A stretch of DNA of 64,000 nucleotides from Hyalangium minutum (GTDB lineage Bacteria; Myxococcota; Myxococcia; Myxococcales; Myxococcaceae): assembly GCF_000737315.1 (NCBI RefSeq), contig NZ_JMCB01000014.1:186001-250000 (forward strand). Direction: 5' to 3'. The position numbers and the translations under genes were made by a program. A model generated the notes under the pieces. The model made no database searches and was not told the DNA's origin. It saw only the letters and a program-made list of their open reading frames with translations. Of the stretch, positions 14,556 to 58,489 are shown in pieces (the first letter of the stretch is position 1; the number at the start of each line of letters is the position of its first letter).

Positions 14556-14556
14556 G

Positions 14557-39155: not shown

Positions 39156-39412
39156 AGACAGCCTCGACTGCAAACCCATGGCCAAGAACACACGACAGAG
39201 ATCCCGAGGCAGGATGTCCCCTTGCTTCTCAAAACGTTCGTTCTGACATGTCAGAGAGGGGGGAATTGACATGCCGGGAAAGAGGACTGACACGTCGGCC
39301 TCCATCCCCCCATCTCCACAGCCCCGATCTCACTGCATCCATGGATGGGCTCTGAACTTGCAGAGGGCAAGGTCACACCCCCATGGGCCCAGACACGGGC
39401 CAGGAGTACGGC

Positions 39413-43037: not shown

Positions 43038-43043
43038 AGGAGG
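43038..43043 (+). promoter_or_regulatory. strong Shine-Dalgarno site of the precursor peptide gene
   Basis: AGGAGG followed by 9 nt then ATG 43053. Confidence 0.8.
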
Positions 43044-43052
43044 AAACACCCA

Positions 43053-43178
43053 ATGGATAACACCCATGAGCCGCAGACGGAGCAGGACACCCAGCCAACC
43101 GATGAGGAATTGACCGACGAGCAACTGCTGCAGATGGCCGAGGGCTCCTGCACCTGGGGCGCCAACTGCGGCAAGTAG
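43053..43178 (+). CDS. RiPP precursor peptide, 41 aa: MDNTHEPQTEQDTQPTDEELTDEQLLQMAEG-SCTWGANCGK
   Basis: Translated by hand (absent from the ORF track); strong RBS; acidic leader ending ELTDEQL..MAEG like the ELSDEELxxVxGG leaders; Ser/Thr/Cys/Trp core; first gene of a LanM operon. Confidence 0.88.
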   Translation: MDNTHEPQTEQDTQPTDEELTDEQLLQMAEGSCTWGANCGK

Positions 43179-43202
43179 TGGTGGCCCTGCTCTGAAACCT
43201 CA

Positions 43203-44270
43203 ATGAAGTCCCTCACCGACGACATGGAACTCAATCTCAACACATCGTTGAAATGGGTGGAGCCGCTGCTCCCTCCATTGCTCATGTCGCCGGTGAGCTT
43301 CTCTCGCATCCAGAGAGCCGCGCGACTGCTGCCTCGGTCCGCAGCAGATTTTCTCGGCTTCGAGTGCCGTCTGGTGGAGAGCGACTCGCAGACGGACTGT
43401 GCCCTCAATCTGACAGCGGATGGAGCTCGCTACCTGGCCGGGCGCCATGAGGTGGCGCTGCCAGAGGAGTTGCGGACGGAGAGCTGGCAGCGCGTTCAGC
43501 GCTTCTATCAAGAGTGGGGAGATACCCGGGAGCCCGCCTATGTGGACGCGGGGGCAACCTGGCTGGAGTTCGACACGGCTTCCGACGAGCTCAGGCCCAA
43601 TCTCCTCTTCGGATATTGGCCCGGCAAGAAGGAGATCCGGCGCTCCCTGCCCTGGCTGGTGCAGTCCATCATTCCCATGCTGCTGGGCATGCCGATTTCA
43701 CAGGCGCTTCAGAGCAACCTGCTTCGCTGCTTCGAACTGTGTCCGCCCGGGACGGACGACTTCCAGGTCGGGCTGATGATCGCCCGCCACATCCAGGCCG
43801 TGCGGCTGTGTGTGTTTGATATTCACCCAGACGAGGCGCCTGCCTACCTCGAGAGGGTGGGATGGAAGGGCCCGATGGATGAGGTCCGCCGGACCTTGGA
43901 GGTGCTCGCGCCGCACGCCGACTTCATGGGGCTGCATCTGGACGTGGGAGAACAGCTCTATCCCCAGATCGGGATCGAGCCGGGCTTCGTCGCGGGCCCT
44001 TGGGCTCGCCAGCCTCACCTGGAGCCTCGCTGGCATCACCAGTTCGAGCAATTGGTGAACATGGGCCTGTGTACGCCCTCCAAGCGCGACGCCTTGCTGG
44101 GCTGGGTCGGCCATCAGCGATACCCGGCGGACTCGAAGGATGGAGGGCTGGTGCTGCTGCGGGGGCTGAGCCACCTGAAGATCGTTCTGCGAACGGGCGC
44201 CCCTGCCCTGGCGAAGGCCTACTTCGGTATTGCCGACCGGCCCCTGAAGGCTGGGAATGGAGTGGCTTGA
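43203..44270 (+). CDS. putative (ABBA/DMATS-like) peptide prenyltransferase
   Basis: GFECRL, WLEFD and C-terminal GLSHLKIV...AKAYFG pattern; context with a terpene cyclase and polyprenyl synthase; fold not verified. Confidence 0.5.
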   Translation: MKSLTDDMELNLNTSLKWVEPLLPPLLMSPVSFSRIQRAARLLPRSAADFLGFECRLVESDSQTDCALNLTADGARYLAGRHEVALPEELRTESWQRVQRFYQEWGDTREPAYVDAGATWLEFDTASDELRPNLLFGYWPGKKEIRRSLPWLVQSIIPMLLGMPISQALQSNLLRCFELCPPGTDDFQVGLMIARHIQAVRLCVFDIHPDEAPAYLERVGWKGPMDEVRRTLEVLAPHADFMGLHLDVGEQLYPQIGIEPGFVAGPWARQPHLEPRWHHQFEQLVNMGLCTPSKRDALLGWVGHQRYPADSKDGGLVLLRGLSHLKIVLRTGAPALAKAYFGIADRPLKAGNGVA

Positions 44271-44273
44271 GCC

Positions 44274-45329
44274 ATGGATGCAGCCATTGCCGCGGCGCTG
44301 GACTTCCTGTTGAAGGCGCAGGACGCACGAGGAGCGTGGAAGGACTTCATGCTCCCGGCCACCCAGAGCGACGTCTGGGTCAGCGGCTTCGTAGGGGAGG
44401 TGCTGGCCGGCCTGGCCGAGCCCGAGGCGCGGCGGGCCGCAGAGGCCGCCTGGCGGTACCTCGAGGACGTGGGAGTGCCGGGGGGAGGTTGGAGCTACAA
44501 CACCCGGGTCCCAGGAGATGCCGACAGCACGCTCTGGGGACTGAGGCTGGCGGGGGCGCTGGGGTTCGGAGACGCTGCTCGAGCGAAGGCTGCGAGGGAC
44601 TTCCTGGAGCGCCACCTGCGCGAGGACGGCGGCATGGCGACCTATGCGTCGGCCGAGTCCGTGCGGGATTACATCGGGTTGCCGCCGGAGGTCTCCTTCC
44701 AAGGGTGGACGGGTTCCCATGTGTGCGTGAGCGCCGCAGGCGCCAACCTCCCCGCCTACCGCGAGCGGCTGTGTGCGTACCTGCTGCGGACTCAGGATGA
44801 GCACGGGGCCTGGCCCGCCTATTGGTGGTTCGACGAGGAGTACGCCACCGCCGAGGCCGTGGCGGCCTTGGCGGCAGCCCATGAGGCCTTAGTGCCTGCG
44901 TCCGAGAGACTCTCCCGGATCGAGCGGGCCGCGCAGTGGGCGCTGGGGCGTGTGGCTCGCCACCTGGAGTCCGTAGACACGCGGCCTCCGTCGTTCGCGC
45001 TGGCGCTGGCGCTGCGGGTGCTGACTCGCGCCAAGCCCTCACCGCAGCGGCAGGAGGCCCTCGCCCGGGGCGTGTCCCAGCTCTGCGCCTGGCAGAAGCC
45101 TCAGGGCGACTGGTCTCCTTCTGCCCGGTTGCGAGTGCCACGTCCGGACGTGGTGACGCCGGAGTCGAAGGCTCCTTGGACGCTCTGGAAGGGGCTGCCT
45201 CCCGGAGTCGCCTCGGCCGAAGACATCTTGCGCCACACCTTCACCAACTACTCCCTGGATCATTACGCCGTGTACACGACAGGGACCGTGCTTCGCGCCC
45301 TGAACGAGGTGCGCGTGCTCCAGGGATGA
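44274..45329 (+). CDS. monodomain class II terpene cyclase (prenyltransferase/squalene oxidase repeat)
   Basis: QW-type repeats QDARGAW, QDEHGAW, QKPQGDW; DADST acid motif; 351 aa, i.e. a single (alpha/alpha)6 domain. Confidence 0.75.
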   Translation: MDAAIAAALDFLLKAQDARGAWKDFMLPATQSDVWVSGFVGEVLAGLAEPEARRAAEAAWRYLEDVGVPGGGWSYNTRVPGDADSTLWGLRLAGALGFGDAARAKAARDFLERHLREDGGMATYASAESVRDYIGLPPEVSFQGWTGSHVCVSAAGANLPAYRERLCAYLLRTQDEHGAWPAYWWFDEEYATAEAVAALAAAHEALVPASERLSRIERAAQWALGRVARHLESVDTRPPSFALALALRVLTRAKPSPQRQEALARGVSQLCAWQKPQGDWSPSARLRVPRPDVVTPESKAPWTLWKGLPPGVASAEDILRHTFTNYSLDHYAVYTTGTVLRALNEVRVLQG

Positions 45330-45353
45330 GCTGGACACGAGAAAGGGGGGACC

Positions 45354-46163
45354 ATGACGGGACTGCCGAAACTCCATGCAACCCAGCCGCTGGCCGAAGC
45401 CCATGCGGAAGCGCTGCGCGCTGCGGGCCACGTGCTGCTTCGAGGCGTCTTCTCTCCCGAGGAGATCGCCGCCTACCGCCCCGCGCTGCGGGACTACATC
45501 CTGGAGAAGCGGGAGCGGCTCTCCGCGGGGGAGCGCAACCTGGGTGCGAGCCCGGAGAACACGATCTTCAGCCTCGGGGATGCCCCCCAAGCCGTGGCCG
45601 ACTTCGTGACGGCGCCACGTCTGGGCGAGCTCACCGCCCGGTTGCTCGGCGTCGAGGCCGTGCGGATCCTCCACTTCTGCGGCTTCTTCAAGCCCGGGGG
45701 AGGCCCGCCCACGCCATGGCACCAGGACCTGAGCTTCATCCCGTTGGACAGTGATCGGACGATCTCCGCCTGGATCCCGCTGATGGACGTCACGCCGGAG
45801 ATGGGAAGCCTGGTCTTCGCCGAGGGTTCTCATCAGCAAGGCTATCAAGAGCCCTCCGCCGCGCACCGCTTCTGCCTGGCGCGCAACGGGGCGATGAAGG
45901 CCGGAGACGTATCGCTCCACATGGGGTGGACCCTGCATGCCGCCGGGAGGAATGAGAGCGCGAGGATGCGAGAGGCGATCGCCGTGTGTTTCTACGCGGA
46001 CGGCGCACGGGTGACTTGCGGGGAAGGATTGCCGTTCCGCCGCAGCTTGATGACGTCCTACTTCGCCGGGCTCCGCCCGGGAGACGTGGCCGCAGGTCCC
46101 ATGAACCCCGTGGTCTTCCGGCGAAGCGGCCCGCCGGCTGGCTTGGAAGGAGCGCATCCGTGA
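45354..46163 (+). CDS. PhyH-family Fe(II)/2OG dioxygenase
   Basis: KPGGG..TPWHQD, AWIPL, GSH, distal H (TLHAAG.N.S...R). Confidence 0.9.
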   Translation: MTGLPKLHATQPLAEAHAEALRAAGHVLLRGVFSPEEIAAYRPALRDYILEKRERLSAGERNLGASPENTIFSLGDAPQAVADFVTAPRLGELTARLLGVEAVRILHFCGFFKPGGGPPTPWHQDLSFIPLDSDRTISAWIPLMDVTPEMGSLVFAEGSHQQGYQEPSAAHRFCLARNGAMKAGDVSLHMGWTLHAAGRNESARMREAIAVCFYADGARVTCGEGLPFRRSLMTSYFAGLRPGDVAAGPMNPVVFRRSGPPAGLEGAHP

Positions 46164-47062
46164 CTGCACATGGTCCCCTTCCCTCCCTCGAGGAGAAGTA
46201 TGAGCTGCCGGAGGAACAGCTCGAGACGTTCCGCCGTGACGGACACGTCAAGCTGCGCGGCGTCCTGTCTCCCGCGGAGCTCGAGACATACCGCCCACAC
46301 CTGAAGCGCGTGGTGGAGTCGCACAGCGCGGAGACGCACGCCATGGAGCGCAAAGTGGCGGGCCACGGGAAGAACTGGATGTTCGTCAACAACCTGTGGA
46401 CGCAGGATGACATCACTCGCCACTTCATCCAGAGCCGGCGCCTGGCACGGCTCGCGGCGGAGCTGCTGGGGGTGGAGGGCGTCCGGCTGTTCCGGGATCA
46501 GTCGTACTTCAAGGGTCCCGGTGGCTCCAATACGCCCTGGCACCAGGACTCCCGCTTCATGCCGCTCGATACGGACAAGATCATCACCTTCTGGGTGCCG
46601 CTCACCGCCATCACCCCAGCCATGGCGCCCATGGGCTACGTGACAGGCTCTCATCAGGCCGGGTACCTGGGCACCTCGAACGGGGACGATGCATCGATGG
46701 ACCGCTTCGAGGAGGAGCTCAGCGGCAAGGGCTTCCAGATCGCCAACTACGGCTCCTTCGACGCCGGCGATATCGCGGCGCACTGGGCCAGCACGCTGCA
46801 CTCCTCGCGCACCAACACCGCGCCCATCCTTCGGGAGATCATCGTCATCGTCTATTTCGCCGATGGGGCGCGCGTCGCGCCGGAGAAGCCCCTAGAGAAG
46901 CTGGCTCCACCGTCGGAGTTCTACGCCAACATCATCCAACGAGAGAACCGGACCACCTCCTTGCCCGGGCTGAAGCCGGGAGCGCTGGCTGCCGGGCCGA
47001 TGACTCCTCTCGTCTACAGCCGCTCGTGGGATGAGCACGACGCAAGGAGCCCCATCCCATGA
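46160..47062 (+). CDS. PhyH-family Fe(II)/2OG dioxygenase (second copy)
   Basis: TPWHQD, FWVPL, GSH, TLHSS..N....R; GTG 46160 overlaps the upstream TGA. Confidence 0.9.
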   Translation: MTAHGPLPSLEEKYELPEEQLETFRRDGHVKLRGVLSPAELETYRPHLKRVVESHSAETHAMERKVAGHGKNWMFVNNLWTQDDITRHFIQSRRLARLAAELLGVEGVRLFRDQSYFKGPGGSNTPWHQDSRFMPLDTDKIITFWVPLTAITPAMAPMGYVTGSHQAGYLGTSNGDDASMDRFEEELSGKGFQIANYGSFDAGDIAAHWASTLHSSRTNTAPILREIIVIVYFADGARVAPEKPLEKLAPPSEFYANIIQRENRTTSLPGLKPGALAAGPMTPLVYSRSWDEHDARSPIP

Positions 47063-48249
47063 GCGCGGCGGAAGAACTCGGCCTCGAGGATCTGCTGGCT
47101 CCCGTCGCCCCTGAGGTCTTCTTTCGTGAGTACTGGGAGCAGAAGCCGCTGGTGACACGGGGGAGGACGGAGGACTTCTTCGCGCCCTTGTTCACCCTCC
47201 GGGACGTGGATCGGGTGATCTGCTACCAGAAGCCGGGGCCCGGGCGGTTGGATCTGGTGACGGCGGGAGGTTTCGTCCGCGACAACTTCCTCAACCTCGA
47301 CAACACCGCCAACATCAACCTCGTCTACGAGAACTATCTGAAGGGCAGCACGGTCATCCTCAGTGGTCTCGAGGAGACGTGGGAGCCGCTGGTGGTGTTC
47401 TGCCGGAAGTTGGAGGGGCAAATCAGCCACCCGGTCGCCGTGGCCGTCTACCTGACGCCACCCCATCACCATGGCGTGCAGCCTCACTTCGACACCCAGG
47501 AGAACTTCATCCTTCAGGTGGATGGGGTGAAGAACTGGAAGGTGTATGGGGCCGCGCAGGAGTTGCCGCGCGTCGAGGGCTCCTACACGCCCGTGCCCCG
47601 GGAGCGGCTCCCCGAGCTGCTGCTGGAGACGGAGCTGCACCCAGGAGACATGCTCTACGTACCTCGGGGCTTCGTGCACGAGGCGGAGGCGCGGGACAGC
47701 GCCTCGCTGCACATCACCGTGGATGTGCATGTGCGCACCTGGCGCGACTTCCTGGAGGACGCGCTGGCGGCCATGGCGGACCGTCACCCTCCGTTCCGCA
47801 GGTCCCTGCCTCCGGGGCTCCTGAACGGCTCGCTCGCGGTGGCCACGCTCGAGGAGAAGTTCCGGGAGTTGGTGGAGCTCATGCACCGCGAGGTGCGGCT
47901 CGCGGATGCACTGGGAAAGCATGCCGAGAAGCTGATCGTCTCCAAGCCGCCGCCGCCGGACGGGCACTTCGCCCTGCTGCACGCGGAGATCGGCCTGGAC
48001 ACGCCGCTGAGGAAACGGACCGCGATGCTGACTCGGCGCTTCCAGGAGGCAGCGGGGGCGGGCATCCAGTTCTCCGGCAACCAGCTCCGAGGCCCCGCGA
48101 AGATCGCTGAGGCACTGCGGTACATCGATGAGACCGAGTTCGTGGTGCCGTCTCAGCTCCCAGGGGGGCTGAGCGACAACGAGAAGCTGGTGCTCGTACG
48201 GCGGCTGGTGCGGGTGGGGCTCCTGACGCACGCTTCGGAGCGGACATGA
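47059..48249 (+). CDS. JmjC/cupin-4 (ribosomal-oxygenase-like) hydroxylase
   Basis: PHFD, FILQVDGVKNW, PGDMLYVPRGFVHEA; C-terminal winged-helix-like segment. Confidence 0.9.
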   Translation: MSAAEELGLEDLLAPVAPEVFFREYWEQKPLVTRGRTEDFFAPLFTLRDVDRVICYQKPGPGRLDLVTAGGFVRDNFLNLDNTANINLVYENYLKGSTVILSGLEETWEPLVVFCRKLEGQISHPVAVAVYLTPPHHHGVQPHFDTQENFILQVDGVKNWKVYGAAQELPRVEGSYTPVPRERLPELLLETELHPGDMLYVPRGFVHEAEARDSASLHITVDVHVRTWRDFLEDALAAMADRHPPFRRSLPPGLLNGSLAVATLEEKFRELVELMHREVRLADALGKHAEKLIVSKPPPPDGHFALLHAEIGLDTPLRKRTAMLTRRFQEAAGAGIQFSGNQLRGPAKIAEALRYIDETEFVVPSQLPGGLSDNEKLVLVRRLVRVGLLTHASERT

Positions 48250-49397
48250 GTCTGGCGAGACTGCTCCATCCCCTCGCGCCATCGGTCTTCTTCGAGGGGG
48301 CCTGGGAGCGCAAGCCCCTGGTGCTCCCTGGGCCGTCTGAGCGCTGGTCCGGACTCTTCTCCTCCCGCGATCTCGGCCGCCTGCTGGCCTATCAGCCGCC
48401 CCGGGCCATCGAGGGAATGATGCTCGTCAAGGAGGGCCGCCACTGGGATGAGAACTGGCTGAAGCCGGACGGCTCGCCACGCCTGGAGCAGGTGCAGGCC
48501 GGATGGCGCGAGGGCTACACGATCATCATCAACAAGGTGGGTCAGTTCTGGGAGCCGGTGGGCCGGTTCTGCGCCGCGGTGGAGGAGGAGCTGCACCACC
48601 CCGTGGGTGGCAACCTCTACATGACCCCCTCTGGGGCGCAGGGCTTCAAGGCCCACTTCGACATCATGGATGCCTTCGTCCTGCAGGTCGAAGGTTCCAA
48701 GGTGTGGCAGGTGCGCGGCCCACAGCTCAGGCTTCCCTTGCCGGACGAGCACGCCGCGACCTCGCCCGAGTCCCTGCCTCCCGTCATCCTGGAGCACGAG
48801 CTGAAGAGCGGAGAGGTGCTCTACATCCCCCGTGGCTTCGTCCACGAGGCCCGGACGGCGCGAACGCACTCGGTGCACCTCACCCTCGGGTTGCAGGCCG
48901 TCACCTGGAGCGATCTGTTCACAGCGGCCCTCACCGCCGCCCGGCAAGATGAGCGGTTCCGCAAGGGGCTGCCTCTTCGCTTCCTGGAGGGCTCCGCCAT
49001 GATGGAGCAGACCTTCCGGGAGCTGCTTGCGGAGCTGCCACGGTACCTGGAGTTGGGTCCTGCGCTCACCCAGCTCGCCGAGCGGCTCGTCGTCCAGAAG
49101 CCACCGCCACCCGCCGAGGATCTGCTCGAGGGGTCCGTGGAAGTGGAGGCCAGCGCCGTGCTCGCGCGGCGCCCAGGTGTGGTGCTGCGTGTCATGGAGG
49201 GCCCCGGATATGCGGGCCTGCAGTACTCTGGAGGCAAGTTCATGGGGCCCGCCAAGATTGGCCCCGCGCTGCGGCACGTTGCCCGCAACTCCGTCCTCCC
49301 CGTTCGGTCGCTGCCGGGCCTGAGTGAAAAGGAGCAGCTCGTTCTTGCGGGGCGGCTGGTCCGCAGCGGGGTGCTCGCTGTGCGGGAGGCCTCATGA
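48246..49397 (+). CDS. JmjC/cupin-4 hydroxylase (second copy)
   Basis: AHFD, FVLQVEGSKVW, GEVLYIPRGFVHEA. Confidence 0.9.
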   Translation: MSLARLLHPLAPSVFFEGAWERKPLVLPGPSERWSGLFSSRDLGRLLAYQPPRAIEGMMLVKEGRHWDENWLKPDGSPRLEQVQAGWREGYTIIINKVGQFWEPVGRFCAAVEEELHHPVGGNLYMTPSGAQGFKAHFDIMDAFVLQVEGSKVWQVRGPQLRLPLPDEHAATSPESLPPVILEHELKSGEVLYIPRGFVHEARTARTHSVHLTLGLQAVTWSDLFTAALTAARQDERFRKGLPLRFLEGSAMMEQTFRELLAELPRYLELGPALTQLAERLVVQKPPPPAEDLLEGSVEVEASAVLARRPGVVLRVMEGPGYAGLQYSGGKFMGPAKIGPALRHVARNSVLPVRSLPGLSEKEQLVLAGRLVRSGVLAVREAS

Positions 49398-52300
49398 GCC
49401 AGGAGCGCCTGGCGGAGGAAGAGGCCGTGCGCCGGATTGCGGCGCGCGCCTCGACACTCTGGGATCGCCTGGAGGGCGCCTTCGTTCCGGAGGAGGGTCC
49501 TGAGAGTGCACAGCTTGCGAGCGAGCGTCTCGCGAAGTGGCGCGCCAAGGCCGCTGGAGGCGACGAGCGGCTCTTCCAGAAGCGGCTCGAATGGCTTGGC
49601 ACCTCGCCGCAGAAGGTGCGGCCCCTCCTCGGCGATGTCCGGCTCGATGGGCCGATCCCTGCCTGGACGCGGACGTTCCAGCGGGCCATGGCGCTCCGGC
49701 GCCCGGCGGGCCCAGGAGGACAAGCTGCCCCGTTTCCCTTCGGCGAGCTGATGCTCCCTTTCGTGGAGGCAGGGAAAGAGCTGCTGGCGCCCGAGTGCCG
49801 CGCCGTGTTCACGGCGGAGGCCTTCGATCACCTGTTGGAGGATCTGGTCCACGAGCTGAGCTATGTCGCGGCACCGACCCTGCTGGCGGAGTTCACGAGC
49901 TTCCGCTCACGGCAGGGAGGCGGCGCGGAGCCCACCTCCCGCAGGCTGTACGAGGCATTCACGGCCCATCAGCTCGGGGAGGGCCTGTGGCAGCTCTTCT
50001 CCGACGCCTCTGTGCTCGCGCGGCTTCTCTCGACTGTCACCGAGCAGTGGGCTCGCCACGTCAGCGAGATTGCCCGGGCTGTGAAAGCGGATCAGCGGGA
50101 GCTGCAGCGGGTCTTCACCTCCGGAGCGCCGCTGGGGCGGATCACTTCCATCCAGCCCTCGCTCTCGGATCGGCACCAGGGTGGACGCACCGTCGCTCGC
50201 GTCACGTGCGGAGGAGGGTTGCAGCTCTTCTACAAGCCTCGCGGCCTGGGCGTGGAAGATGCGTGGTACGGCCTGCTCGAGGAGCTGAATGCACGCGGGG
50301 GAGACTTCCGCCGCCTACGGGTGCTCGACCGGGGAGATCGGAGCTGGGTGGAGCCGGCCCTCCACGCGCCATGCGCCAACACCCTGGAGGCCCGGCAGTT
50401 CTACGTCCGCGCGGGGATGCTGCTGAGCCTCTTCTACGTGCTCGAGGCCTCGGATTGCTTCTACGAGAACATCATCGCCGCCGGCGCCTTTCCCGTCCTC
50501 ATCGACACGGAGACGTTGATGCACCACGTCCCCCACCGGAGCCAGGACGGCGCCTTCCATTCCGTGATCCATGCGGGCTTTCTGCCCTCGTGGGACGTGG
50601 GGCCTCGTGGTGAGTGTTTCGACATCAGCGGACTGGGCGCCACCGCAGGCCAGGTGACTGGCTACCTGCGACGGCAGTGGCGGCACGTCAACACCGATGC
50701 CATGGCGCTGGAGCATGTGCCCATCCAGGTAGAGACGGACGAACACCTGCCCAAGCTGAACGGCGTCTCCCTGAGGGCGGCTGACTACACCGGGGAACTC
50801 ATCGAGGGCTTCTCGATGATGTACCGCCTGCTGCGCAAGCACCGGGAGGAACTGGCCCGGCCCGAGTCCCCGCTCGCGCGCCTGGGCACTCAGGATATCC
50901 GCTTCATCTTCCATGCCTCCCGCTTCTATGGGCTGCTGCTGAAGCGGTTGTGCTCCCCGCAGCACATGAAGACCGGCGTGGAGCGGAGCATCGAGACGGA
51001 CATCCTCAGCCGCTTCTATGTGGAGTCGCCGGAGAAGTCCCACTACGTGCCTCTGCTCGCGGCGGAGTTGGAGGCGCTCGAACGGCTGGACATTCCCTGC
51101 TTCAAGGCGCGTGCAGACAGCCACGCGCTCACGCTGCCCACGGGACAGGTGCTGCCCGAGGCCTTCGAACAGAGCGGCAGCGAGCGCGTGTGGCGCAAGC
51201 TCTCTGCACTGGATGAGGCGGATCTGGAGCTGCAGATGCGCTTCATCCATGGCTCGCTGAGCATGGCCAATCCCCCCCAGGGGGCCAAGACCGGTGCACG
51301 GCCCAGGCACGCGGCGGCCTCTCAGGAGACGGGGCCTTTGACGCGCGAGGAGCTTGCCGCCGAAGCCTCCTCCATCGGCGCCACGCTGCAAGAGCGGGCC
51401 CTCTTCGCGCCGGTGCGCATGGATCTGTACGGCGGGCTGGGGGGCATCGCTCTGTTCTACGCGGCCCTGGAGCACGTATCCGGGCAGGGCCGCCGGATGG
51501 CCCTCGCGGCTCTGTCCTCGCTGAGGCGGTTCGTGGCCACGGAGGACGCCCGGCGCGCGGCCCAGGAAGGCTACCCCTTGGGAGCGGCCACGGGGGTGGG
51601 GTCCTTCCTCTACGTGCTGTGCCGCTCCGCCACCCTGCTGGGTGAGCCCTCCTTGCTCGAGGATGCCACGCGGGCCGCAGGCCTCATCGCCCCGGAGGTG
51701 ATCGAGGCCGACAGCGCGTTCGATGTCATGTCAGGAGTGGCGGGCGCCATCCTTGGGCTGATGACCCTGCACCAAGCGACGGGAGCGGCAGGGGCACTCG
51801 AGAAGGCCTTGCACTGTGGGGAACACCTGCTGAAGCACCAGCTCCCCTGCGAGCCGGCGGGGGCCTCGTGGCGCACAAGGAAGGGCCGACCCCTGACCGG
51901 ATTGGCGCATGGGGCGGCGGGGATCGCCCTCGCGCTGCTGCGCCTCCATGCCGCAGTGGGGGATGCGCGGCTGCGTCAAGCGGCTGAGCAGGCATTGGCC
52001 TTCGAAGATGCCGTCTTCGTCCCCTCCGAGGGGAACTGGCCCGACTTCCGGCAGGCCCACGAGGGAACTCCCGCCTTCATGAGCGCGTGGTGTCACGGGG
52101 CGCCGGGCATTGGCCTGGCGCGCATCTCGGGACAGGCCTTGCTGGACTCGCCGCGAGTCCGACGAGACATCGAGGCTGCTGTCTCGTCCGTGAGGCAACA
52201 GGGGCTGGCGGACAAGGATGGGCTGTGCTGCGGACAGACAGGGAGAATCGAACTCCTCCTGGCCGCCGCGAGGGTGAGCGGAGATAGAGGGCTCGAGGAG

Positions 52301-52483
52301 CTGGCGCTGCGCCAGGCCTCCTCGGTGGTGAGGGGCGCCCGGGCCAGCGGCTACCGGTTCTCCGGGGTCGCGCGGGGCGGCTTCTTCGATCCGTCCTTCT
52401 TCCAGGGGCTCTCGGGCATCGGCTACCAACTGCTGCGGCTCGCATTCCCGGGGCGGCTTCCCTCGGTGCTCGTGTGGGAGTGA
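49394..52483 (+). CDS. lanM: class II lanthipeptide synthetase LanM
   Basis: SDRH.GG, YKPR, D.(F)YEN, LIDTETL dehydratase motifs; DLYGG..GIALF, GLAHGAAG, WCHGAPG, LCCG cyclase motifs. Confidence 0.9.
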   Translation: MSQERLAEEEAVRRIAARASTLWDRLEGAFVPEEGPESAQLASERLAKWRAKAAGGDERLFQKRLEWLGTSPQKVRPLLGDVRLDGPIPAWTRTFQRAMALRRPAGPGGQAAPFPFGELMLPFVEAGKELLAPECRAVFTAEAFDHLLEDLVHELSYVAAPTLLAEFTSFRSRQGGGAEPTSRRLYEAFTAHQLGEGLWQLFSDASVLARLLSTVTEQWARHVSEIARAVKADQRELQRVFTSGAPLGRITSIQPSLSDRHQGGRTVARVTCGGGLQLFYKPRGLGVEDAWYGLLEELNARGGDFRRLRVLDRGDRSWVEPALHAPCANTLEARQFYVRAGMLLSLFYVLEASDCFYENIIAAGAFPVLIDTETLMHHVPHRSQDGAFHSVIHAGFLPSWDVGPRGECFDISGLGATAGQVTGYLRRQWRHVNTDAMALEHVPIQVETDEHLPKLNGVSLRAADYTGELIEGFSMMYRLLRKHREELARPESPLARLGTQDIRFIFHASRFYGLLLKRLCSPQHMKTGVERSIETDILSRFYVESPEKSHYVPLLAAELEALERLDIPCFKARADSHALTLPTGQVLPEAFEQSGSERVWRKLSALDEADLELQMRFIHGSLSMANPPQGAKTGARPRHAAASQETGPLTREELAAEASSIGATLQERALFAPVRMDLYGGLGGIALFYAALEHVSGQGRRMALAALSSLRRFVATEDARRAAQEGYPLGAATGVGSFLYVLCRSATLLGEPSLLEDATRAAGLIAPEVIEADSAFDVMSGVAGAILGLMTLHQATGAAGALEKALHCGEHLLKHQLPCEPAGASWRTRKGRPLTGLAHGAAGIALALLRLHAAVGDARLRQAAEQALAFEDAVFVPSEGNWPDFRQAHEGTPAFMSAWCHGAPGIGLARISGQALLDSPRVRRDIEAAVSSVRQQGLADKDGLCCGQTGRIELLLAAARVSGDRGLEELALRQASSVVRGARASGYRFSGVARGGFFDPSFFQGLSGIGYQLLRLAFPGRLPSVLVWE

Positions 52484-52494
52484 GGGGAGAGCGC

Positions 52495-53952
52495 ATGGAA
52501 CGGAACGATACGCCGGAGCAGCTCTCCTCCTTTCTGGAGCGCATGAGGGCCTCGGAGCCAGAAGGCGGTGAGGCCATCATCGATCAGGCCCGCGAGCTGC
52601 TGGAGCAGGCCTATGTCCACCTGCCCGACAACCAGGCCTCGGGAGTGGATCCCCTCGGCCTGTTGGCGGCGCTTCAACGCGAGCTGCCCCGGGATCGGGT
52701 CCAGCTGTACCGCGAGCTGCTCGCGATCTTCGCACGGCTCGGGGATCGCCACACTCACTGCAGCCTGCCCGAGCCTTTCACGAGCCAGGTCGCCTTCCTC
52801 CCCTTCTTGGTGGGGGAGTTCTTCGAGCGGGGCGAGCGGTATCTCGCGGTGCTCCACTCCGCCACCCGCGAGCTGGAGCGTGGGGATGTCCTCGTCTCGT
52901 GGAATGGCGCCGCCATGGCGGAGGTGCTGGGACGCCAGCAGGAGTGGCAGCACGGCTCCCATCTCGAGGCCCGGTACGCCAAGGCAGTGCAGACGCTGAC
53001 TTTCCGTCCCCTCGCGTTGATGCCACCGCCCGAGGAGGAAACAGTCGCCTTGGAGTGCGTGTCTGCCATGGGAGCGAGGCGGACGGTGCGGATGAACTGG
53101 CGCGTGGCAGATGCCGCGTGGCTCGCGCAGCGCTTCCACTCTTTCCTGGATGGAGTCTCCGCGGCGGAGCCTGGACAGGAGCATGGCTTCTCCGCGCGCC
53201 GGGTGGAGACCTCTCACGGAACGTTTGGCTATATCCGGGTGAACTCGTTCCAGGAGCGCCCCGAGCCCTTTCTGGGACGGTTCTCGCGAGTGCTGAAGGA
53301 CATGCCCCGCAGCGGGCTGATCCTGGACATGCGGAGTTGTGAGGACGGCATCGTGCAGCTCGGGGAGCGGCTGCTCCAGCTCTTCACCCCACGGAGGATA
53401 CAACCCGAGCCCTTCCAGTTCCGGGTCACGGAGTTGACCCTGCAGCTCGTCCGCTCGGTGCCAGCGCTTGCCGGCTGGCGAGAGGCCGTCGAGCGTGCGG
53501 CGGCCCAGGGGCGGATCTACTCGGAAGCGCTGCCACTGACGACCGAGAGTGAGGCGAACGGGAGCCGCCAGAAGTACGCCGGTGCCGTCGTGCTCCTCAC
53601 GAGCGCGTTGACCTACAGCACCGCCGAGATGTTCGCCGCGGGGTTTCAGGACCACGAGATCGGCCGGGTGGTAGGGACAGCCCCGCGCACAGGGGGTGGA
53701 GGCGCCTCGCCCTGGCCGCAGAGCACCCTGTTCAAGCTCTCTGGGAGAGCCGCCTTCCGTCCCCTGCCCCGTGGCCCTTTCTTTCGCGTCGCCGTCCGAA
53801 GGTGTCGGCGCGTGCATGCGAGGGCGGGCGCTCTCCTCGAGCGTGAGGGCGTGGCCCCCGACGTGCTCCACCCGCCGACGCGGGCGGATCTCTTCCACCA
53901 TGACAGGGACCTCCTGGAAGTGGCCGGAAGAGTGCTGACAGGGATGCAGTAG
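52495..53952 (+). CDS. S41-family peptidase
   Basis: GYIRV.SF, GLILDMR, YSTAEMFA, G..T.GGGA; PDZ-like middle region; ATG 52495 behind GGGGAG. Confidence 0.8.
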   Translation: MERNDTPEQLSSFLERMRASEPEGGEAIIDQARELLEQAYVHLPDNQASGVDPLGLLAALQRELPRDRVQLYRELLAIFARLGDRHTHCSLPEPFTSQVAFLPFLVGEFFERGERYLAVLHSATRELERGDVLVSWNGAAMAEVLGRQQEWQHGSHLEARYAKAVQTLTFRPLALMPPPEEETVALECVSAMGARRTVRMNWRVADAAWLAQRFHSFLDGVSAAEPGQEHGFSARRVETSHGTFGYIRVNSFQERPEPFLGRFSRVLKDMPRSGLILDMRSCEDGIVQLGERLLQLFTPRRIQPEPFQFRVTELTLQLVRSVPALAGWREAVERAAAQGRIYSEALPLTTESEANGSRQKYAGAVVLLTSALTYSTAEMFAAGFQDHEIGRVVGTAPRTGGGGASPWPQSTLFKLSGRAAFRPLPRGPFFRVAVRRCRRVHARAGALLEREGVAPDVLHPPTRADLFHHDRDLLEVAGRVLTGMQ

Positions 53953-53973
53953 CCGGAACAACGAAGGAAGGAG

Positions 53974-54912
53974 ATGACGATGTCCTCAGCCGACCTGACA
54001 ACCAGCCCCCATGAGGGCTCGGCCCACATCGAATTCCTCCGGCGCTTGCATGAGCGGCAACAGCTCGTGACACGAGCGCTGGACGAGCACTTCCCTGCCG
54101 GAGCCGGACCCTTGATGGATGCGATCCGCGGGGCCTTGCTGGCCGATGGCAAGCGGCTGAGGCCCATTCTCTGCCTGGAGGCCTGCCAGTGGTCTGGTGG
54201 GAGCCCCCAGGCCGCGCTGCCCGCAGCCTGCGCCATCGAGATGATCCACAAGATGACGCTGGTGCACGATGACCTGCCGGCCATGGATGATGCGCAGACG
54301 CGCAACGGCCGGCCGGCGCTGCACAGGGTGCATGGCGAGGCGCTGGCCATCCTCGCCGGAGATGCACTGCTGGTGCATGCGTTCGGGCTGCTGGCGTCCA
54401 CTCGCGAGGTGCCCGCCGAACGGGTGACGGGCGCCATCACGCGCCTGTGCCAGGCGCTGGGCACCGCCGGGCTGGCCGGGGGGCAAGCCCTGGACGTGCT
54501 CTCTCAAGCCGGAGATGTGACGCCCGAGAAGCTCGATCATGTTCACACCTGGAAGACCGCGAGCCTCTTTGAGGCGGCCATCGTCATCGGCGCGGAGATG
54601 GGAGGGGCAAACGCCTCCCAGGTCGAGGCGCTCGCCCGCTATGGGATGCTGCTGGGCAGGGCGTTCCAGATCTCCGATGACCTTCAGGATGCCCAGGACA
54701 CCCAGGCGGTGACGCCGCACGAGGTGACGAACTACGTCCAGCTCCACGGGGTGGAGGGGGCCCGGCGCAAGCTGCGCGAGCTGCTGAGCCAGGCGGTCTC
54801 CGCGATCCGCTCGGTCCAGGGCGGAGACAGCCAGCTGCTGGCGGGAATCACGGAGCTGGTCTGGGAGCACTCCTGGAGCACGGGTGAGGGACACCATGGC
54901 CATCACGCCTGA
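53974..54912 (+). CDS. crtE: trans-isoprenyl diphosphate synthase, GGPP-synthase-like
   Basis: GKRLRP, HKMTLVHDDLPAMDD...RNGRP (FARM), AGGQALD, KTASLF, FQISDDLQD (SARM). Confidence 0.88.
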   Translation: MTMSSADLTTSPHEGSAHIEFLRRLHERQQLVTRALDEHFPAGAGPLMDAIRGALLADGKRLRPILCLEACQWSGGSPQAALPAACAIEMIHKMTLVHDDLPAMDDAQTRNGRPALHRVHGEALAILAGDALLVHAFGLLASTREVPAERVTGAITRLCQALGTAGLAGGQALDVLSQAGDVTPEKLDHVHTWKTASLFEAAIVIGAEMGGANASQVEALARYGMLLGRAFQISDDLQDAQDTQAVTPHEVTNYVQLHGVEGARRKLRELLSQAVSAIRSVQGGDSQLLAGITELVWEHSWSTGEGHHGHHA

Positions 54913-56896
54913 AGCGGCTCCGCCTCGGTACGACGTCTGTCTGTTGTCGATGCCATTCCCCGTGCTGAACCAGCCCTCCATGGCGCTGGGGCTGCTGAAG
55001 CCCGCCCTGACGCAAGCCGGGCTGCCGGCAAAGACGCTCTACCCCTGCCTGTGGTTCGCCGAGGAGGTGGGGCTTGATGTCTATGTCGCCATCTGTGACT
55101 CCAAGCAGGAGTTCCTCGTGGGGGAATGGATCTTCGCCGAGGCTGCCTTCCCCGGCTTCCATCCTGACCGGGACAGCTACCTGGAGCGCGTGTTGTCCGC
55201 GCCCGTATCCCGGGGGCTGCTGAGGAAGAGCCGCTTCGAGGGCGATCCGCGCGCGGCCCTGCTCGCCGCTCGCCAGGCGGCCCAGGGCTTCATCGAGAAG
55301 GTGGCCACTCGCGTCCTGGAGCTGCGGCCTCGCATCGTCGGATGCACCTCTACATTCACCCAGCACTGTGCCTCGCTGGCCGTGCTCCGGAAGATCCGCG
55401 AGCTGGCACCAGAGGTTGTCACCGTCATGGGTGGGGCCAACTGCGAGGGGGAGATGGGCGTGAGCGCGCGGCGCCACTTCCCCTGGGTGGACTTCGTGGT
55501 CTCCGGGGAGGGAGAGCTGCTGTTTCCCAAGCTCTGCCAGAGCATCCTGGAGCATGGGCGGCAGATCCCGACGCAGCACCTGCCCCAGGGTGTCATCGGA
55601 GAGGCGCAGCTGCGCCAGCCAGCAGGAGCCCCGGCGCCCAGGGCCTCGGTGTCACGCATGGACACCACGCCCGTGCCGGACTTCGATGACTACTTCGCGG
55701 AGCTCCACTCCTCGCCATTGAGGTCCTTCATCTCTCCAGGGCTCGCCATGGAGACCTCGCGGGGGTGCTGGTGGGGCAAGAAGCACCACTGCACGTTCTG
55801 TGGGCTGAACGGCGGGAACATGGACTTCCGCTCCAAGAGCGCCGGCCGCGTCATCTCGGAGCTGGCCGAGCTGTCCACGCGGTATGGCATCCGCAAGTTC
55901 AACATCGTCGACAACATCATGGACCTTGCCTACATCCAGGAACTGGCTCCACGCATCACCTCGGACACGCCCTACACGCTCTTCTTCGAGACGAAGGTCA
56001 ACCTGAAGCGCGCCCAACTGGAGCGGCTCGCCGCGGCGGGGATCCGGCGCCTCCAGCCCGGCATCGAGAGCATGCACGACGAGATCCTCCAGTTGGTGGA
56101 CAAGGGGACCACGGCGCTGCAAAACATCCAGCTTCTCAAGTGGGCGCGTGAGCTTGGCATCTTCATCACCTGGAACTTCCTGTGGGATGTGCCCGGGGAG
56201 CAGGATGCGTGGTACGCCGAGATGGCCGAGTGGCTGCCCTGGGTGAGTCATCTCCAGCCGCCCGGAGTGGATCGCATCCAGTTCCACCGCTTCAGCCCCT
56301 ACCACCAGCGGCCGGCCAGCTTCGGGCTCACGCTCGAGCCCTACCCTCTCTATGCGCACGTCTATCCGCTCACCCAGGAGGAGCTCGGGGGGCTCGCCTA
56401 CTATTTCCACGATCCGCGCCGGCGCTCCGCGAAGGAGGAGCTGGAGCGGCGGCCCCACCTGAGGCAGACGATGCGGGTGGTCGCGCAGTGGAACAAGCTG
56501 TGGAACCGCGGCGGGTTCGAGGGGACCTGGGAAACGCCCGTGCTGCGGATGTTCCACGAGGCAGAGCGCCTGCGCCTCGTGGACACGCGGCCCTGCGCCA
56601 CCGCAAGCGAGCATGTCCTGACGGGGCTGGCGGCGCAGGTCTACCTGCAGTGTGACGCGATCCAGACCCTGAAGAGCTTGCTCGAGGGCCTGGCGCAGAG
56701 CGGAGTCGAAGGAGCCTCGCCCGGGGACGTGCAGGCCATCCTGGACGACCTGGTGAAGTGCAAGCTGCTGCTACGGCAGAGGGAGCGGTTCGTCGCCCTG
56801 GCCCTGCACGAGGTGTCCCGGATTCCTGACTCGGACGAGGACTTCCCCGGCGGCTACACGGATGTGGACGCCTGGCATCAGGCCTCGGCTGTATAG
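54896..56896 (+). CDS. B12-binding RiPP maturation radical SAM protein (putative C-methyltransferase)
   Basis: SMPF, GGANC, ETSRGCWWGKKHHCTFCGLN (Cx7Cx2C), QPGIES, RFSPY; C-terminal wHTH/RRE-like region; ATG 54896. Confidence 0.88.
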   Translation: MAITPEAAPPRYDVCLLSMPFPVLNQPSMALGLLKPALTQAGLPAKTLYPCLWFAEEVGLDVYVAICDSKQEFLVGEWIFAEAAFPGFHPDRDSYLERVLSAPVSRGLLRKSRFEGDPRAALLAARQAAQGFIEKVATRVLELRPRIVGCTSTFTQHCASLAVLRKIRELAPEVVTVMGGANCEGEMGVSARRHFPWVDFVVSGEGELLFPKLCQSILEHGRQIPTQHLPQGVIGEAQLRQPAGAPAPRASVSRMDTTPVPDFDDYFAELHSSPLRSFISPGLAMETSRGCWWGKKHHCTFCGLNGGNMDFRSKSAGRVISELAELSTRYGIRKFNIVDNIMDLAYIQELAPRITSDTPYTLFFETKVNLKRAQLERLAAAGIRRLQPGIESMHDEILQLVDKGTTALQNIQLLKWARELGIFITWNFLWDVPGEQDAWYAEMAEWLPWVSHLQPPGVDRIQFHRFSPYHQRPASFGLTLEPYPLYAHVYPLTQEELGGLAYYFHDPRRRSAKEELERRPHLRQTMRVVAQWNKLWNRGGFEGTWETPVLRMFHEAERLRLVDTRPCATASEHVLTGLAAQVYLQCDAIQTLKSLLEGLAQSGVEGASPGDVQAILDDLVKCKLLLRQRERFVALALHEVSRIPDSDEDFPGGYTDVDAWHQASAV

Positions 56897-56911
56897 GCAG
56901 CGGAGCGCGGC

Positions 56912-58489
56912 ATGACCTTCTCGAAGAAGGACCCGATCGACGCCCTCTTCCGCGCCTGGGATCGCCCAGACAGCCCAGGGTGTGCGCTGGGCATCTACGA
57001 AGATGGCGAGCCTCTCTACATGAGGGGTTATGGCTGCGCGCAGCTGGAGCATGGAGTCCCCATCACCCCCACCACGGTGTTCCACGTCGCGTCCCTCTCC
57101 AAGCAGTTCACGGCCATGGCGGTGGGGCTGCTGGCCCAGTCTGGGCGGCTCTCTCTGGACGAGGACATCCGGCGCTACATCCCCGAGCTCCCCGAGGGAC
57201 CTCTCCTCACGCTCCGGCACTTCCTGCACCACCTCAGTGGCCTGCGCGATCAGTGGGACTTGTTACGCCTGGCGGGCTGGCGTCCGGCCGATCTCAGGAC
57301 GACAGGGGACATCCTGAGGCTCGTCACACGGCAGAAGGCGCAGAACTTCGCTCCCGGCACACGGTTTCAGTACATCAACACCGGCTACACGCTGCTGGGC
57401 ATCGCGATCGAACGGGTCACGGGGGTCTCCTTGCGGGAGTACACCGAGGAGCACCTCTTCAAGCCCTTGGGCATGCTGCACACGGCGTTTCAGGATGATC
57501 ATCAGCGGATCCTTCCAGGGCGTGCGCAGGCCTACTCGATGAGGCCGCGGGGCGGCTGGAAGATCAACGTCCCACCCTATGAGACGGTGGGTCCCACGGG
57601 GCTGTTCTCGACGGTCGAGGACTTCCTGCTCTGGGAGCGCAACTTCCTGCGGCCCATCGTGGGGGACGCGGCCTTCATCCAGTTGGCGATGGCGCCCGGC
57701 GCGTTCAACGATGGACGTCCGGTCAGCTATGGCTTTGGCCTCATGCTCGGGGAGTACCGGGGCCTGCCCATCGCGGAGCATTCGGGTGGAGATGCGGGCT
57801 ACCGCGCGCACTACCTGCGGTTTCCCGAGCAACGGCTCGCGGTAGCGGTGTTCGCCAATGCCTTGGAGATCCACCCCACTGTGTTGGCACGGCAAGTGGC
57901 CGACGTTCTCCTGGAAGGGCGCTTCCAGTCCGCGCCGGAGGCGGCCGCGGACAACGGGCCCTCCGGGCATGAGCTGAGCTCGAGGGTGGGCCTGTATCGT
58001 GACCAGTGGAGCGGGATCACCTCCAAGGTGGAGCTCTGGGAGGGGAGGCTCTTCCTGGTTCCGAGCACGGGCGGAGTGTACGAGTTGCTCCCAGCAGGGC
58101 CGGAGCGGTTCCGTTTCCTCAACGTGGATGCGGAGTGCCAGTTCACGTCCGCTGGGCAGATGCTGGTGAAGTACGGTGCTCAACCGACTGGACTCTGTGA
58201 GCGCGTCGCGCTGGAAGCCTGCGGGACGAAAGCCCTGGTGGGCGACTATGCCGGGACCTATCAGAGTGACGAGCTGGGAGTGCGGTGGGTCCTGGACGTC
58301 TCGGGAGAGGCGCTCGTGTTGAAACGGGAGCGGTTCCCGGATGCCCGCATCGAGTTCACCGCGGATGACGAGGGGACGACAGCCCTCGGGGATTTCCACC
58401 TCCGGTTCACTCGAGACGGCGGAGGCCGGGTCAACGGCCTCTCTCTCTGCGCCGAGCGGGTCTGGAACGTCTCCTTCGCTCGCCTTTAG
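56912..58489 (+). CDS. serine hydrolase, beta-lactamase/D-aminopeptidase-like, with C-terminal beta domains
   Basis: ASLSKQF (SxxK), YINTGY (YxN), HSGG; no signal peptide. Confidence 0.88.
   Translation: MTFSKKDPIDALFRAWDRPDSPGCALGIYEDGEPLYMRGYGCAQLEHGVPITPTTVFHVASLSKQFTAMAVGLLAQSGRLSLDEDIRRYIPELPEGPLLTLRHFLHHLSGLRDQWDLLRLAGWRPADLRTTGDILRLVTRQKAQNFAPGTRFQYINTGYTLLGIAIERVTGVSLREYTEEHLFKPLGMLHTAFQDDHQRILPGRAQAYSMRPRGGWKINVPPYETVGPTGLFSTVEDFLLWERNFLRPIVGDAAFIQLAMAPGAFNDGRPVSYGFGLMLGEYRGLPIAEHSGGDAGYRAHYLRFPEQRLAVAVFANALEIHPTVLARQVADVLLEGRFQSAPEAAADNGPSGHELSSRVGLYRDQWSGITSKVELWEGRLFLVPSTGGVYELLPAGPERFRFLNVDAECQFTSAGQMLVKYGAQPTGLCERVALEACGTKALVGDYAGTYQSDELGVRWVLDVSGEALVLKRERFPDARIEFTADDEGTTALGDFHLRFTRDGGGRVNGLSLCAERVWNVSFARL

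Follow-up and report, generated by a model that had tools for sequence, protein, structure and literature searches.

Peptides carrying a cyclised terpene were reportedly first described in 2024, solely from fused-enzyme systems of cyanobacteria and Bacteroidota, and the NctPC/steromaze pathway is said to be that of Hubrich et al. (Chem 2024, 10:3224). NctPC is an ABBA (alpha-beta-beta-alpha) prenyltransferase fused to an MstE-like cyclase, which transfers geranylgeranyl onto Trp and then cyclises it (PMC13290415); lanthionine macrocyclisation precedes prenylation in this pathway (PMC12715784), the product of which was named steromaze (PMC13647313). ChrPC prenylates a peptide Trp, then uses an MstE-like domain to cyclise the isoprenoid, and accepts C10-C20 donors (PMC13290415), while MstE acts on a C20 chain, that of geranylgeranyl-dihydroxybenzoate (PMC12324236). 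In the mpp cluster of Moorena producens, MppC is a leader-dependent ABBA prenyltransferase of a short core, modifying a Trp inside a LanM-made ring (PMC12715784). Here we analyse a stretch of 64,000 nucleotides from Hyalangium minutum (contig NZ_JMCB01000014.1, positions 186,001 to 250,000; hereafter the window), in which a tightly packed group of 12 genes probably directs the synthesis of a class II lanthipeptide carrying a cyclised isoprenoid. This hitherto uncharacterised cluster is related to the steromaze pathway of cyanobacteria but more extensively tailored.

The gene cluster and its precursor peptide

The open reading frame (ORF) listing of the window, which has about 67% G+C, places 12 reading frames on the + strand at 43053-58489, with the precursor gene first. 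All 12 are intact, with conserved catalytic motifs, and are as follows.

43053..43178, + strand: precursor gene, 41 amino acids (aa); ORF with AGGAGG as ribosome-binding site, 8 nt upstream of the ATG
43203..44270, + strand: gene 1, ABBA-fold (alpha-beta-beta-alpha barrel) peptide prenyltransferase, as predicted from structure and fusion homology
44274..45329, + strand: gene 2, MstE-type monodomain class II terpene cyclase; full-length MstE homology
45354..46163, + strand: gene 3, PhyH Fe(II)/2-oxoglutarate oxygenase, first of two; Pfam PF05721, E 1e-25
46160..47062, + strand: gene 4, PhyH Fe(II)/2-oxoglutarate oxygenase, second of two; Pfam PF05721, E 3e-21
47059..48249, + strand: gene 5, JmjC/ribosomal-oxygenase-type 2-oxoglutarate oxygenase, first of two; Pfam JmjC_2, E 3e-25
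48246..49397, + strand: gene 6, JmjC/ribosomal-oxygenase-type 2-oxoglutarate oxygenase, second of two; Pfam JmjC_2, E 1e-25
49394..52483, + strand: gene 7, class II lanthipeptide synthetase LanM, ProcM-like 'CCG' type; TIGR03897, 764 bits (cut-off 304)
52474..53952, + strand: gene 8, S41-family (C-terminal processing type) serine peptidase; Pfam Peptidase_S41, E 5e-16
53974..54912, + strand: gene 9, short-chain trans-prenyl diphosphate synthase; Pfam polyprenyl_synt
54896..56896, + strand: gene 10, B12-binding radical S-adenosylmethionine (SAM) C-methyltransferase of ribosomally synthesised, post-translationally modified peptides (RiPPs); TIGR03975, 809 bits (cut-off 282)
56912..58489, + strand: gene 11, beta-lactamase-fold three-domain D-aminopeptidase-like serine hydrolase; Pfam Beta-lactamase, E 5e-58, and DUF3471

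The initial annotation, made from the letters of the DNA without database searches, had named most of these enzymes, and every class in its title was recovered: LanM by TIGR03897, the four 2-oxoglutarate oxygenases by two PhyH and two JmjC_2 matches, the polyprenyl synthase by Pfam polyprenyl_synt, the B12 radical-SAM enzyme by TIGR03975 and the MstE-type class II cyclase by a full-length match to MstE with an invariant DxD motif. Its prenyltransferase call for gene 1 also stood, by an ABBA fold in the predicted structure (Foldseek) and by fusion homology, although this function is not readable from sequence families. The S41 peptidase and the D-aminopeptidase-like hydrolase were missing from that title.

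The precursor (MDNTHEPQTEQDTQPTDEELTDEQLLQMAEGSCTWGANCGK) has a leader ending in ...ELTDEQLLQMAEG and a predicted core, SCTWGANCGK, whose boundary we place so as to give 10 residues. The leader motif L[TS]D[ED]QLxxxAEG is common to 28 precursors from three phyla, in which the core pattern [SAM][CS][ST]WG[AT]x(x)C is also conserved. A Ser or Thr at position 3, W4, G5 and a Cys 4-5 residues past the Trp are invariant in 28 of 28, and examples of the cores include, besides SCTWGANCGK, SCSWGANCNKGC, ASSWGANCNKAC, SSSWGAHCNS... and SCTWGTGRCGS. The Ser, Thr and Cys residues of the window core are S1, T3, C2 and C8; of these, Cys2 is kept in the cores from Myxococcota and Acidobacteriota, with Ser in its place in the alphaproteobacterial precursors. 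The window precursor has no match among the NCBIfam leader models, including the nitrile-hydratase-like leader peptide (NHLP, proteusin) model TIGR03793, and its leader ends in AEG, not in the GG/GA of double-glycine-type leaders that go with a LanT exporter (C39 peptidase fused to an ATP-binding cassette (ABC) transporter).

The prenyltransferase and the terpene cyclase

Gene 1 has no Pfam or NCBIfam match at E <= 0.01, and thus belongs to no curated prenyltransferase family (e.g. Trp_DMAT, cyanobactin F), while its approximately 90 close homologues are all annotated as 'hypothetical'. Its function was therefore taken from structure prediction. The AlphaFold2 model, built from a 37-sequence alignment, has a mean predicted local distance difference test (pLDDT) of 93 and a predicted template modelling score (pTM) of 0.90, and shows helices alternating with paired beta-strands. 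When the model was compared with the PDB by Foldseek, the top 50 of 50 matches were ABBA prenyltransferases, the best being the indole prenyltransferases IptA, 5-DMATS and PriB (E 6e-6 to 3e-5, template modelling score ~0.5), with the cyanobactin F-family enzymes ranked below them. The sequence identity to these solved prenyltransferases is 7-13%. At the level of fold, the predicted model confirms gene 1 as a prenyltransferase, and gene 1, encoded on its own, is also homologous to the P domain of prenyltransferase-cyclase fusions.

An exhaustive profile search places gene 1 in a superfamily of which 3,806 clusters, formed at 50% identity, reach E <= 1e-3 and 1,167 reach E <= 1e-30; some of its proteins are about 700 aa long, and no Pfam or NCBIfam model matches this ABBA superfamily. 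Some of its members (P0212-P0357) are fused to MstE-like cyclases, 2-oxoglutarate Fe(II) oxygenases, SAM methyltransferases or flavin adenine dinucleotide (FAD)-binding domains, and there are also tandem prenyltransferase-prenyltransferase proteins and N-terminal domains of ~340 aa of no known kind. A second, divergent ABBA paralogue, ~29-30% identical to gene 1, occurs in some clusters, namely those of a Blastocatellia genome (contig_4703; L028 4886-12230) and of Myxococcus dinghuensis (L006 4906-7901).

Gene 2 (351 aa) is a single beta domain that aligns over residues 4-343 with residues 27-360 of MstE (6sbg/6sbb; phmmer E 6e-58, with 8e-58 for PDB 6sbb), the merosterolic acid synthase of Moosmann et al. 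2020. Its GDADST motif, which holds the catalytic acid, aligns with GDADTT of MstE, and D82 and D84 are invariant in 24 homologues, while its matches to the Pfam SQHop_cyclase models fall just under cut-off. The two proteins are thus alike as monodomain (beta-only) class II cyclases of ~350 aa with a DxD acid motif; they differ in that MstE takes a small geranylgeranylated benzoate, whereas gene 2 would act on a prenylated peptide. Genes 1 and 2 are not fused, but lie 3 nt apart (44270/44274), and they are likewise separate in all of the at least 20 related loci. Hubrich et al. 2024 reportedly describe fusion of prenyltransferase and cyclase as common, not as obligatory.

Recurrence of the cassette in three phyla

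A scan with a profile of gene 1, covering one genome per species, returned 20 loci, and exact-protein look-ups added more. Over 20 loci, spread across three phyla, show the same gene order together with a near-identical precursor, and the cluster is therefore not a chance assembly. The order kept across the three phyla is precursor, prenyltransferase, cyclase, PhyH, PhyH, JmjC, (JmjC), LanM, (S41), and the first three genes are always adjacent. In the Myxococcota the loci belong to Myxococcus dinghuensis, Archangium, Cystobacter, Sorangium and Stigmatella aurantiaca DW4/3-1, and M. hansupus encodes close homologues of gene 1 and of the radical-SAM enzyme; in the Acidobacteriota they belong to Blastocatellia, Pyrinomonadaceae, Terriglobia, Bryobacteraceae and Thermoanaerobaculia, and in the Alphaproteobacteria to Sphingomonas, Alteriqipengyuania and one metagenome-assembled genome (MAG). 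The closest sequenced copy is that of S. aurantiaca DW4/3-1 (CP002271, within 5.016-5.038 Mb), the proteins of which are 78-90% identical to those of the window. Amino-acid identity to the distant phyla is 45-70% with synteny preserved, which implies purifying selection.

Further members of the set travel with the cassette. Radical-SAM orthologues with 56-90% identity are found in genomes carrying it in all three phyla, and the cluster of A. lutimaris, Blastocatellia and M. dinghuensis contains or adjoins a D-aminopeptidase-like homologue. Some related clusters carry DUF6072 genes and ABC transporters. The sphingomonad-type clusters L001 and L023 keep gene 6 as their only JmjC paralogue. Sphingomonas rustica (L020) and S. 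trueperi (L025) have the full enzyme cassette, and no precursor was found there in the 1.5 kb upstream or by a leader-motif regular expression run over the 21-kb loci. The Blastocatellia cluster L028 also holds WelO5-like and NUDIX genes, DUF6072 genes and an ABC transporter, and a second precursor stands directly after its radical-SAM gene.

The smallest version of the cassette is found in a Thermoanaerobaculia MAG (JAXDGL010000032.1; L002/L011 9785-12048) and consists only of precursor, prenyltransferase and cyclase. Its precursor core is SCSWGANCNSNC, in which all Ser and Cys are kept, and no LanM, oxygenase or peptidase gene is adjacent. This three-gene cassette ties the terpene enzymes to a peptide and not to a small molecule.

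It is conceivable that the cluster is silent or decaying in the window strain and yields no product under any condition. S. aurantiaca DW4/3-1 is well studied and has the orthologous cluster, from which to our knowledge no product is known, and the literature searched held no report of one; in addition, the copy of Cystobacter fuscus NCWS (L018 10001-20944) has each cluster gene split into 2-5 frame-shifted fragments. That fragmentation hits every gene of the locus, which makes sequencing error likelier than decay, and the copy in CP043492 (L005) is intact. As the window frames and their catalytic motifs are intact as well, and the conservation across phyla speaks for purifying selection, we regard a dead or permanently silent cluster as highly improbable.

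Fused relatives and comparison with the steromaze pathway

BLAST identified four prenyltransferase-cyclase fusions (P0212, P0236, P0354 and P0338) as homologues of genes 1 and 2 combined. The halves of P0212 (721 aa) share 42% identity with gene 1 and 44% with gene 2, and two PhyH genes adjoin it at its locus (L030 1444-5962, on a Logan SRR21290134 contig), together with an NHLP-type precursor ending in ADCSWGANCGVSA. The core motif of this precursor is that of the window, carried on a leader of a different class, which suggests from the sequences that cores and leaders have been exchanged between systems. The cluster of P0236 is found in Nostoc spp. and comprises two NHLP precursors (...AGG TDTQNHSWTGCASGQSGC..., with HSWTGC inside), a PhyH, a 707-aa fusion, a CCG-type LanM and a C39-ABC exporter. 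Its homologues of genes 1, 2, 4 and 7 show 34%, 40%, 50% and 35-40% identity, respectively. The precursors of both L030 and Nostoc match TIGR03793.

The window cluster is predicted to resemble the NctPC/steromaze system in a LanM-cyclised peptide, an ABBA prenyltransferase acting on Trp and an MstE-like cyclase, and the same CCG motif is present in the LanM of the Nostoc locus. In both cores a Ser or Thr precedes the Trp, which stands a few residues ahead of a Cys. The differences are several: in the window, prenyltransferase and cyclase are encoded separately; its leader has ~31 residues and belongs to no known family, in contrast to the ~150-residue NHLP (proteusin) leader of steromaze, and the core has ~10 residues; and there is no C39-ABC exporter. 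Encoded in the window but not shared by the steromaze system are an additional PhyH, both JmjC oxygenases, the B12 radical-SAM enzyme, the dedicated prenyl synthase, the S41 peptidase and the D-aminopeptidase-like hydrolase. The hosts are Myxococcota, Acidobacteriota and Sphingomonadales for the window family, and cyanobacteria for steromaze.

The prenyltransferase domain of ChrPC, a fusion attributed to Hubrich et al. 2024, is trans-isoprenyl diphosphate synthase-like, with an isoprenoid-synthase fold, whereas gene 1 is predicted to be an ABBA barrel. MppC transfers geranyl (C10), and the mpp cluster has a Nif11 leader and no cyclase, oxygenases or radical-SAM enzyme (PMC12715784). The Cys-Cys-Cys 'CCG' site of gene 7 resembles that of ProcM-type LanMs, and gene 10 is a full-length member of the TIGR03975 group of NHLP/Nif11 methyltransferases. 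Here LanM and radical SAM are joined to terpene chemistry on one short, near-invariant core, in contrast to the hypervariable cores of the prochlorosin type and the long proteusin cores.

These relatives also bear on whether the operon might instead house two unrelated pathways side by side, one for a plain lanthipeptide (from precursor, LanM, peptidases and radical SAM) and the other for a small-molecule meroterpenoid (from prenyltransferase, MstE-like cyclase, prenyl synthase and oxygenases), as in merosterol biosynthesis. In support of this, MstE, the only structurally characterised enzyme of its type, acts on geranylgeranyl-dihydroxybenzoate and not on a peptide (PMC12324236), ABBA prenyltransferases mostly use small aromatics, and PhyH enzymes often tailor terpenoids. 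However, the prenyltransferase and cyclase directly follow the precursor in every locus, one genome keeps just those three genes, and fused homologues adjoin NHLP precursors bearing the same CSWGANC or SW..GC motif. Profile scans of the operon found no gene for an aromatic small-molecule acceptor, whether chorismate- or polyketide-derived, and for one homologous fusion, modification of a Trp in a peptide has been reported (PMC13290415). Two such pathways are thus very improbable, and a small-molecule meroterpenoid pathway was discarded in view of the synteny and the minimal three-gene cassette.

LanM, tailoring enzymes and peptidases

Gene 7 contains the DUF4135 (PF13575) and LANC_like (PF05147) domains of class II lanthipeptide synthetases. 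Its motifs GLAHGAAG, WCHG and GLCCGQTG are shared by the family and by the Nostoc LanM, and the last two form a ProcM-type Cys-Cys-Cys zinc site (WCHG ... GLCCGQTG).

Among the oxygenases, gene 3 bears an HxD motif (WHQD) and is conserved in related loci. Gene 4, which starts with a GTG overlapping the stop codon of gene 3, shares 50% identity with the PhyH of the Nostoc cluster and 48% with the second PhyH of L030, and is likely, from its sequence, the orthologue of the PhyH that adjoins the prenyltransferase-cyclase fusion in Nostoc; one PhyH of the pair is a conserved partner of the fusion enzymes. The nearest solved structures to the JmjC proteins are the protein side-chain hydroxylases NO66, MINA53, YxbC and YcfD, and gene 5 is predicted to be a peptide side-chain hydroxylase.

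Gene 10 covers positions 1-606 of the 606 of the TIGR03975 model, contains both PF02310 and PF04055, and carries the radical-SAM cluster motif CX7CX2C as CWWGKKHHCTFC. The S41 gene follows LanM in most related loci, and its orthologues carry a PDZ_4 annotation. Since S41 peptidases recognise free C-termini and the core has ~10 residues, gene 8 is a candidate leader peptidase that could measure from the C-terminus. Gene 11 matches the D-aminopeptidase model PRK13128 from end to end (159 bits, below cut-off) and, in the PDB, 2qmi and 1ei5; it is a candidate trimming peptidase or immunity protein. A beta-lactam resistance function was considered for gene 11 and rejected, as the three-domain D-aminopeptidase model is matched end to end and the protein scores far below every class C beta-lactamase cut-off.

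Proposed pathway

From these assignments we infer a pathway including its ring topology, Trp acceptor, C20 donor, order of steps, oxygenase and methylase sites and leader-removing peptidase. The 41-aa precursor would be bound via its conserved ELTDEQLLQMAEG leader, and the CCG-type LanM would dehydrate Thr3 (and Ser1) of the core, after which addition of Cys8 to dehydrobutyrine 3 would close a six-residue methyllanthionine ring enclosing Trp4. Geranylgeranyl diphosphate (GGPP) supplied by the gene 9 synthase would then be used by the ABBA prenyltransferase to alkylate the indole of the invariant Trp4, and the MstE-type cyclase would protonate the distal double bond through its DxD acid, so that the chain folds into a polycyclic terpene (a diterpene). 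The PhyH and JmjC oxygenases may hydroxylate the terpene, peptide side chains or both, and the B12 radical-SAM enzyme may C-methylate an unactivated carbon. Finally, the S41 peptidase would remove the leader, possibly measuring from the nearby C-terminus, and the D-aminopeptidase-like hydrolase may help to trim the product or may protect the host. The product would thus be multiply hydroxylated and methylated.

The donor is assigned from gene 9, which is most likely a GGPP synthase. Its best NCBIfam match is the CrtE GGPP synthase model NF045685, with 246 bits against an equivalog cut-off of 460, and its best solved relative is the GGPP synthase 6sxl (E 2e-63), with 7my6, a solved 'farnesyl diphosphate (FPP) synthase', ranked second. 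In GGPP synthases the residues at -4/-5 ahead of the first Asp-rich motif are not aromatic, and gene 9 has Met-Thr at -5/-4 before its first DDxxD (IHKMTLVHDDLPAMDD), close to the Met-Ser of 6sxl (HTMSLIHDD).

Several points weigh against the pathway as drawn, and some of them favour a product of the same hybrid class made by a different key step, through a C15 or shorter donor, an acceptor other than Trp4 (e.g. an S-prenylated Cys2) or prenylation independent of LanM. Gene 9 scores 232 bits against the FPP synthase model, near its score for GGPP synthase and, like it, below cut-off; some clusters have no adjacent prenyl synthase, and the acidobacterial ones use a different synthase type. The near-equal scores and the variable synthase together keep a C15 donor in play, as does the C10-C20 range of the related enzyme ChrPC (PMC13290415). 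The conservation of Cys2 in Myxococcota and Acidobacteriota would suit an S-prenylated acceptor, and the Thermoanaerobaculia locus, which has no adjacent LanM, indicates that prenylation may not depend on the lanthionine ring. Against these departures, Ser replaces Cys2 in the alphaproteobacterial precursors while Trp4 is invariant throughout, the closest fold matches of gene 1 are indole prenyltransferases, and gene 9 lacks the aromatic at -5, as in GGPP synthases. Moreover, the characterised relative NctPC is reported to use GGPP on Trp after macrocyclisation (PMC13290415, PMC12715784), and MstE itself uses a C20 chain (PMC12324236). We therefore judge a different donor, acceptor or order unlikely, and retain transfer of a C20 chain to Trp4 as the probable course.

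The remaining points on the adverse side concern the peptide, the operon and the comparison. The Ser1/Cys2 pair cannot form a conventional ring, and there is no transporter and no C39 leader protease in the window operon. The operon would be a single transcription unit judging by gene spacing alone, and a scan of 42300-59000 for sigma-70 promoters and terminators gave 0 promoters, with terminators at or below shuffle expectation. The Nostoc locus, we infer, is 'nct', from its architecture and genus as matched to second-hand descriptions.

Operon structure and surroundings

The junctions between the 12 genes, in gene order and with the best-supported starts, are +24, +3, +24, -4, -4, -4, -4, -10, +21, -17 and +15 nt. 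With gene 4 starting at 46160, the gene 3/gene 4 junction is -4 (GTGA), and gene 4/gene 5 is also -4 (ATGA). The S41 gene would begin at GTG 52474, giving the -10 junction, or alternatively at ATG 52495, giving +11, and the start of gene 10 at ATG 54896 produces the -17 overlap with gene 9. On the upstream side, a GreA/Rnk-like factor and a histidine kinase lie on the opposite strand, and on the downstream side there are convergent ProDH-like and GNAT genes; all are unrelated to the cluster, so the boundaries first drawn for this operon of packed same-strand genes behind a small precursor were right. Profile scans of both the operon and its flanks revealed no C39 or ABC gene, and an Rfam scan of the whole window gave no match, hence no cobalamin riboswitch despite the B12 enzyme.

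A repeat search upstream of the precursor returned only short matches at chance level. Three direct GCAGTA[CT] copies (GGCGCAGTACCGCAGTACGTGTTGCAGTATTGCC) lie at 42990-43030, upstream of the start codon of the precursor by 20-55 nt; M. dinghuensis has a similar GCAGTAC element ahead of its precursor, and the form in Cystobacter/Archangium is TGCAGTACTGCA. These copies may be an operator or promoter element.

Elsewhere in the window, the - strand at 32047-39305 encodes a 1,648-aa protein that combines a calcineurin-like phosphoesterase, a glucose-methanol-choline (GMC) oxidoreductase and an alpha/beta hydrolase, adjoined by an 847-aa protein with cytochrome c domains like those of RoxA (rubber oxygenase type). 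On the + strand, 14245-18661 holds an ATP-dependent DNA ligase (LigD-like, 635 aa) and, after it, a large helicase of the Lhr type (949 aa); these two form a pair for DNA repair that has no relation to the cluster.

Discussion

The biosynthetic reading of the initial annotation held on every testable point, and its novelty was overstated. It had put forward the joining of a LanM, a terpene cyclase and its own polyprenyl synthase as a combination without precedent, and this fails because a RiPP pathway with LanM, prenyltransferase and MstE-like class II cyclase was published in 2024 (known through PMC13290415, PMC12715784 and PMC13647313). In the literature searched, the genome mining of Hubrich et al. 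2024 aside, we found no such cluster from myxobacteria, acidobacteria or sphingomonads, nor any report of the product of the window cluster. Within that literature, what appears to be new is the split-gene form, the short leader of no known family, the extended tailoring set and the near-invariant core shared across phyla.

The cluster shows steromaze-type logic as modular split enzymes with a very short precursor and a richer tailoring set. Its hosts are culturable, genetically tractable myxobacteria, including S. aurantiaca DW4/3-1, widespread soil Acidobacteriota and sphingomonads, and the 10-residue core with its stand-alone prenyltransferase and cyclase would be an attractive minimal platform for the engineering of terpene-peptide hybrids. 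The analysis also exposes a large ABBA prenyltransferase superfamily, of ~3,800 clusters at 50% identity, for which there is no Pfam or NCBIfam model.

The invariance of the core across phyla suggests a specific, conserved biological target. We tentatively propose, as a possibility that is still doubtful, that the cluster represents an ancient, horizontally shared family of heavily tailored terpenoid-lanthipeptides, whose near-invariant [ST]-W-G-A-N-C core may serve one conserved target or signalling role. If true, this would bring RiPP chemistry that is as yet undescribed, including hydroxylation of a RiPP by enzymes of the JmjC/ribosomal-oxygenase type, methylation of a terpene-peptide hybrid by a B12 radical-SAM enzyme and leader removal by an S41 peptidase working as a 'C-terminal ruler'.

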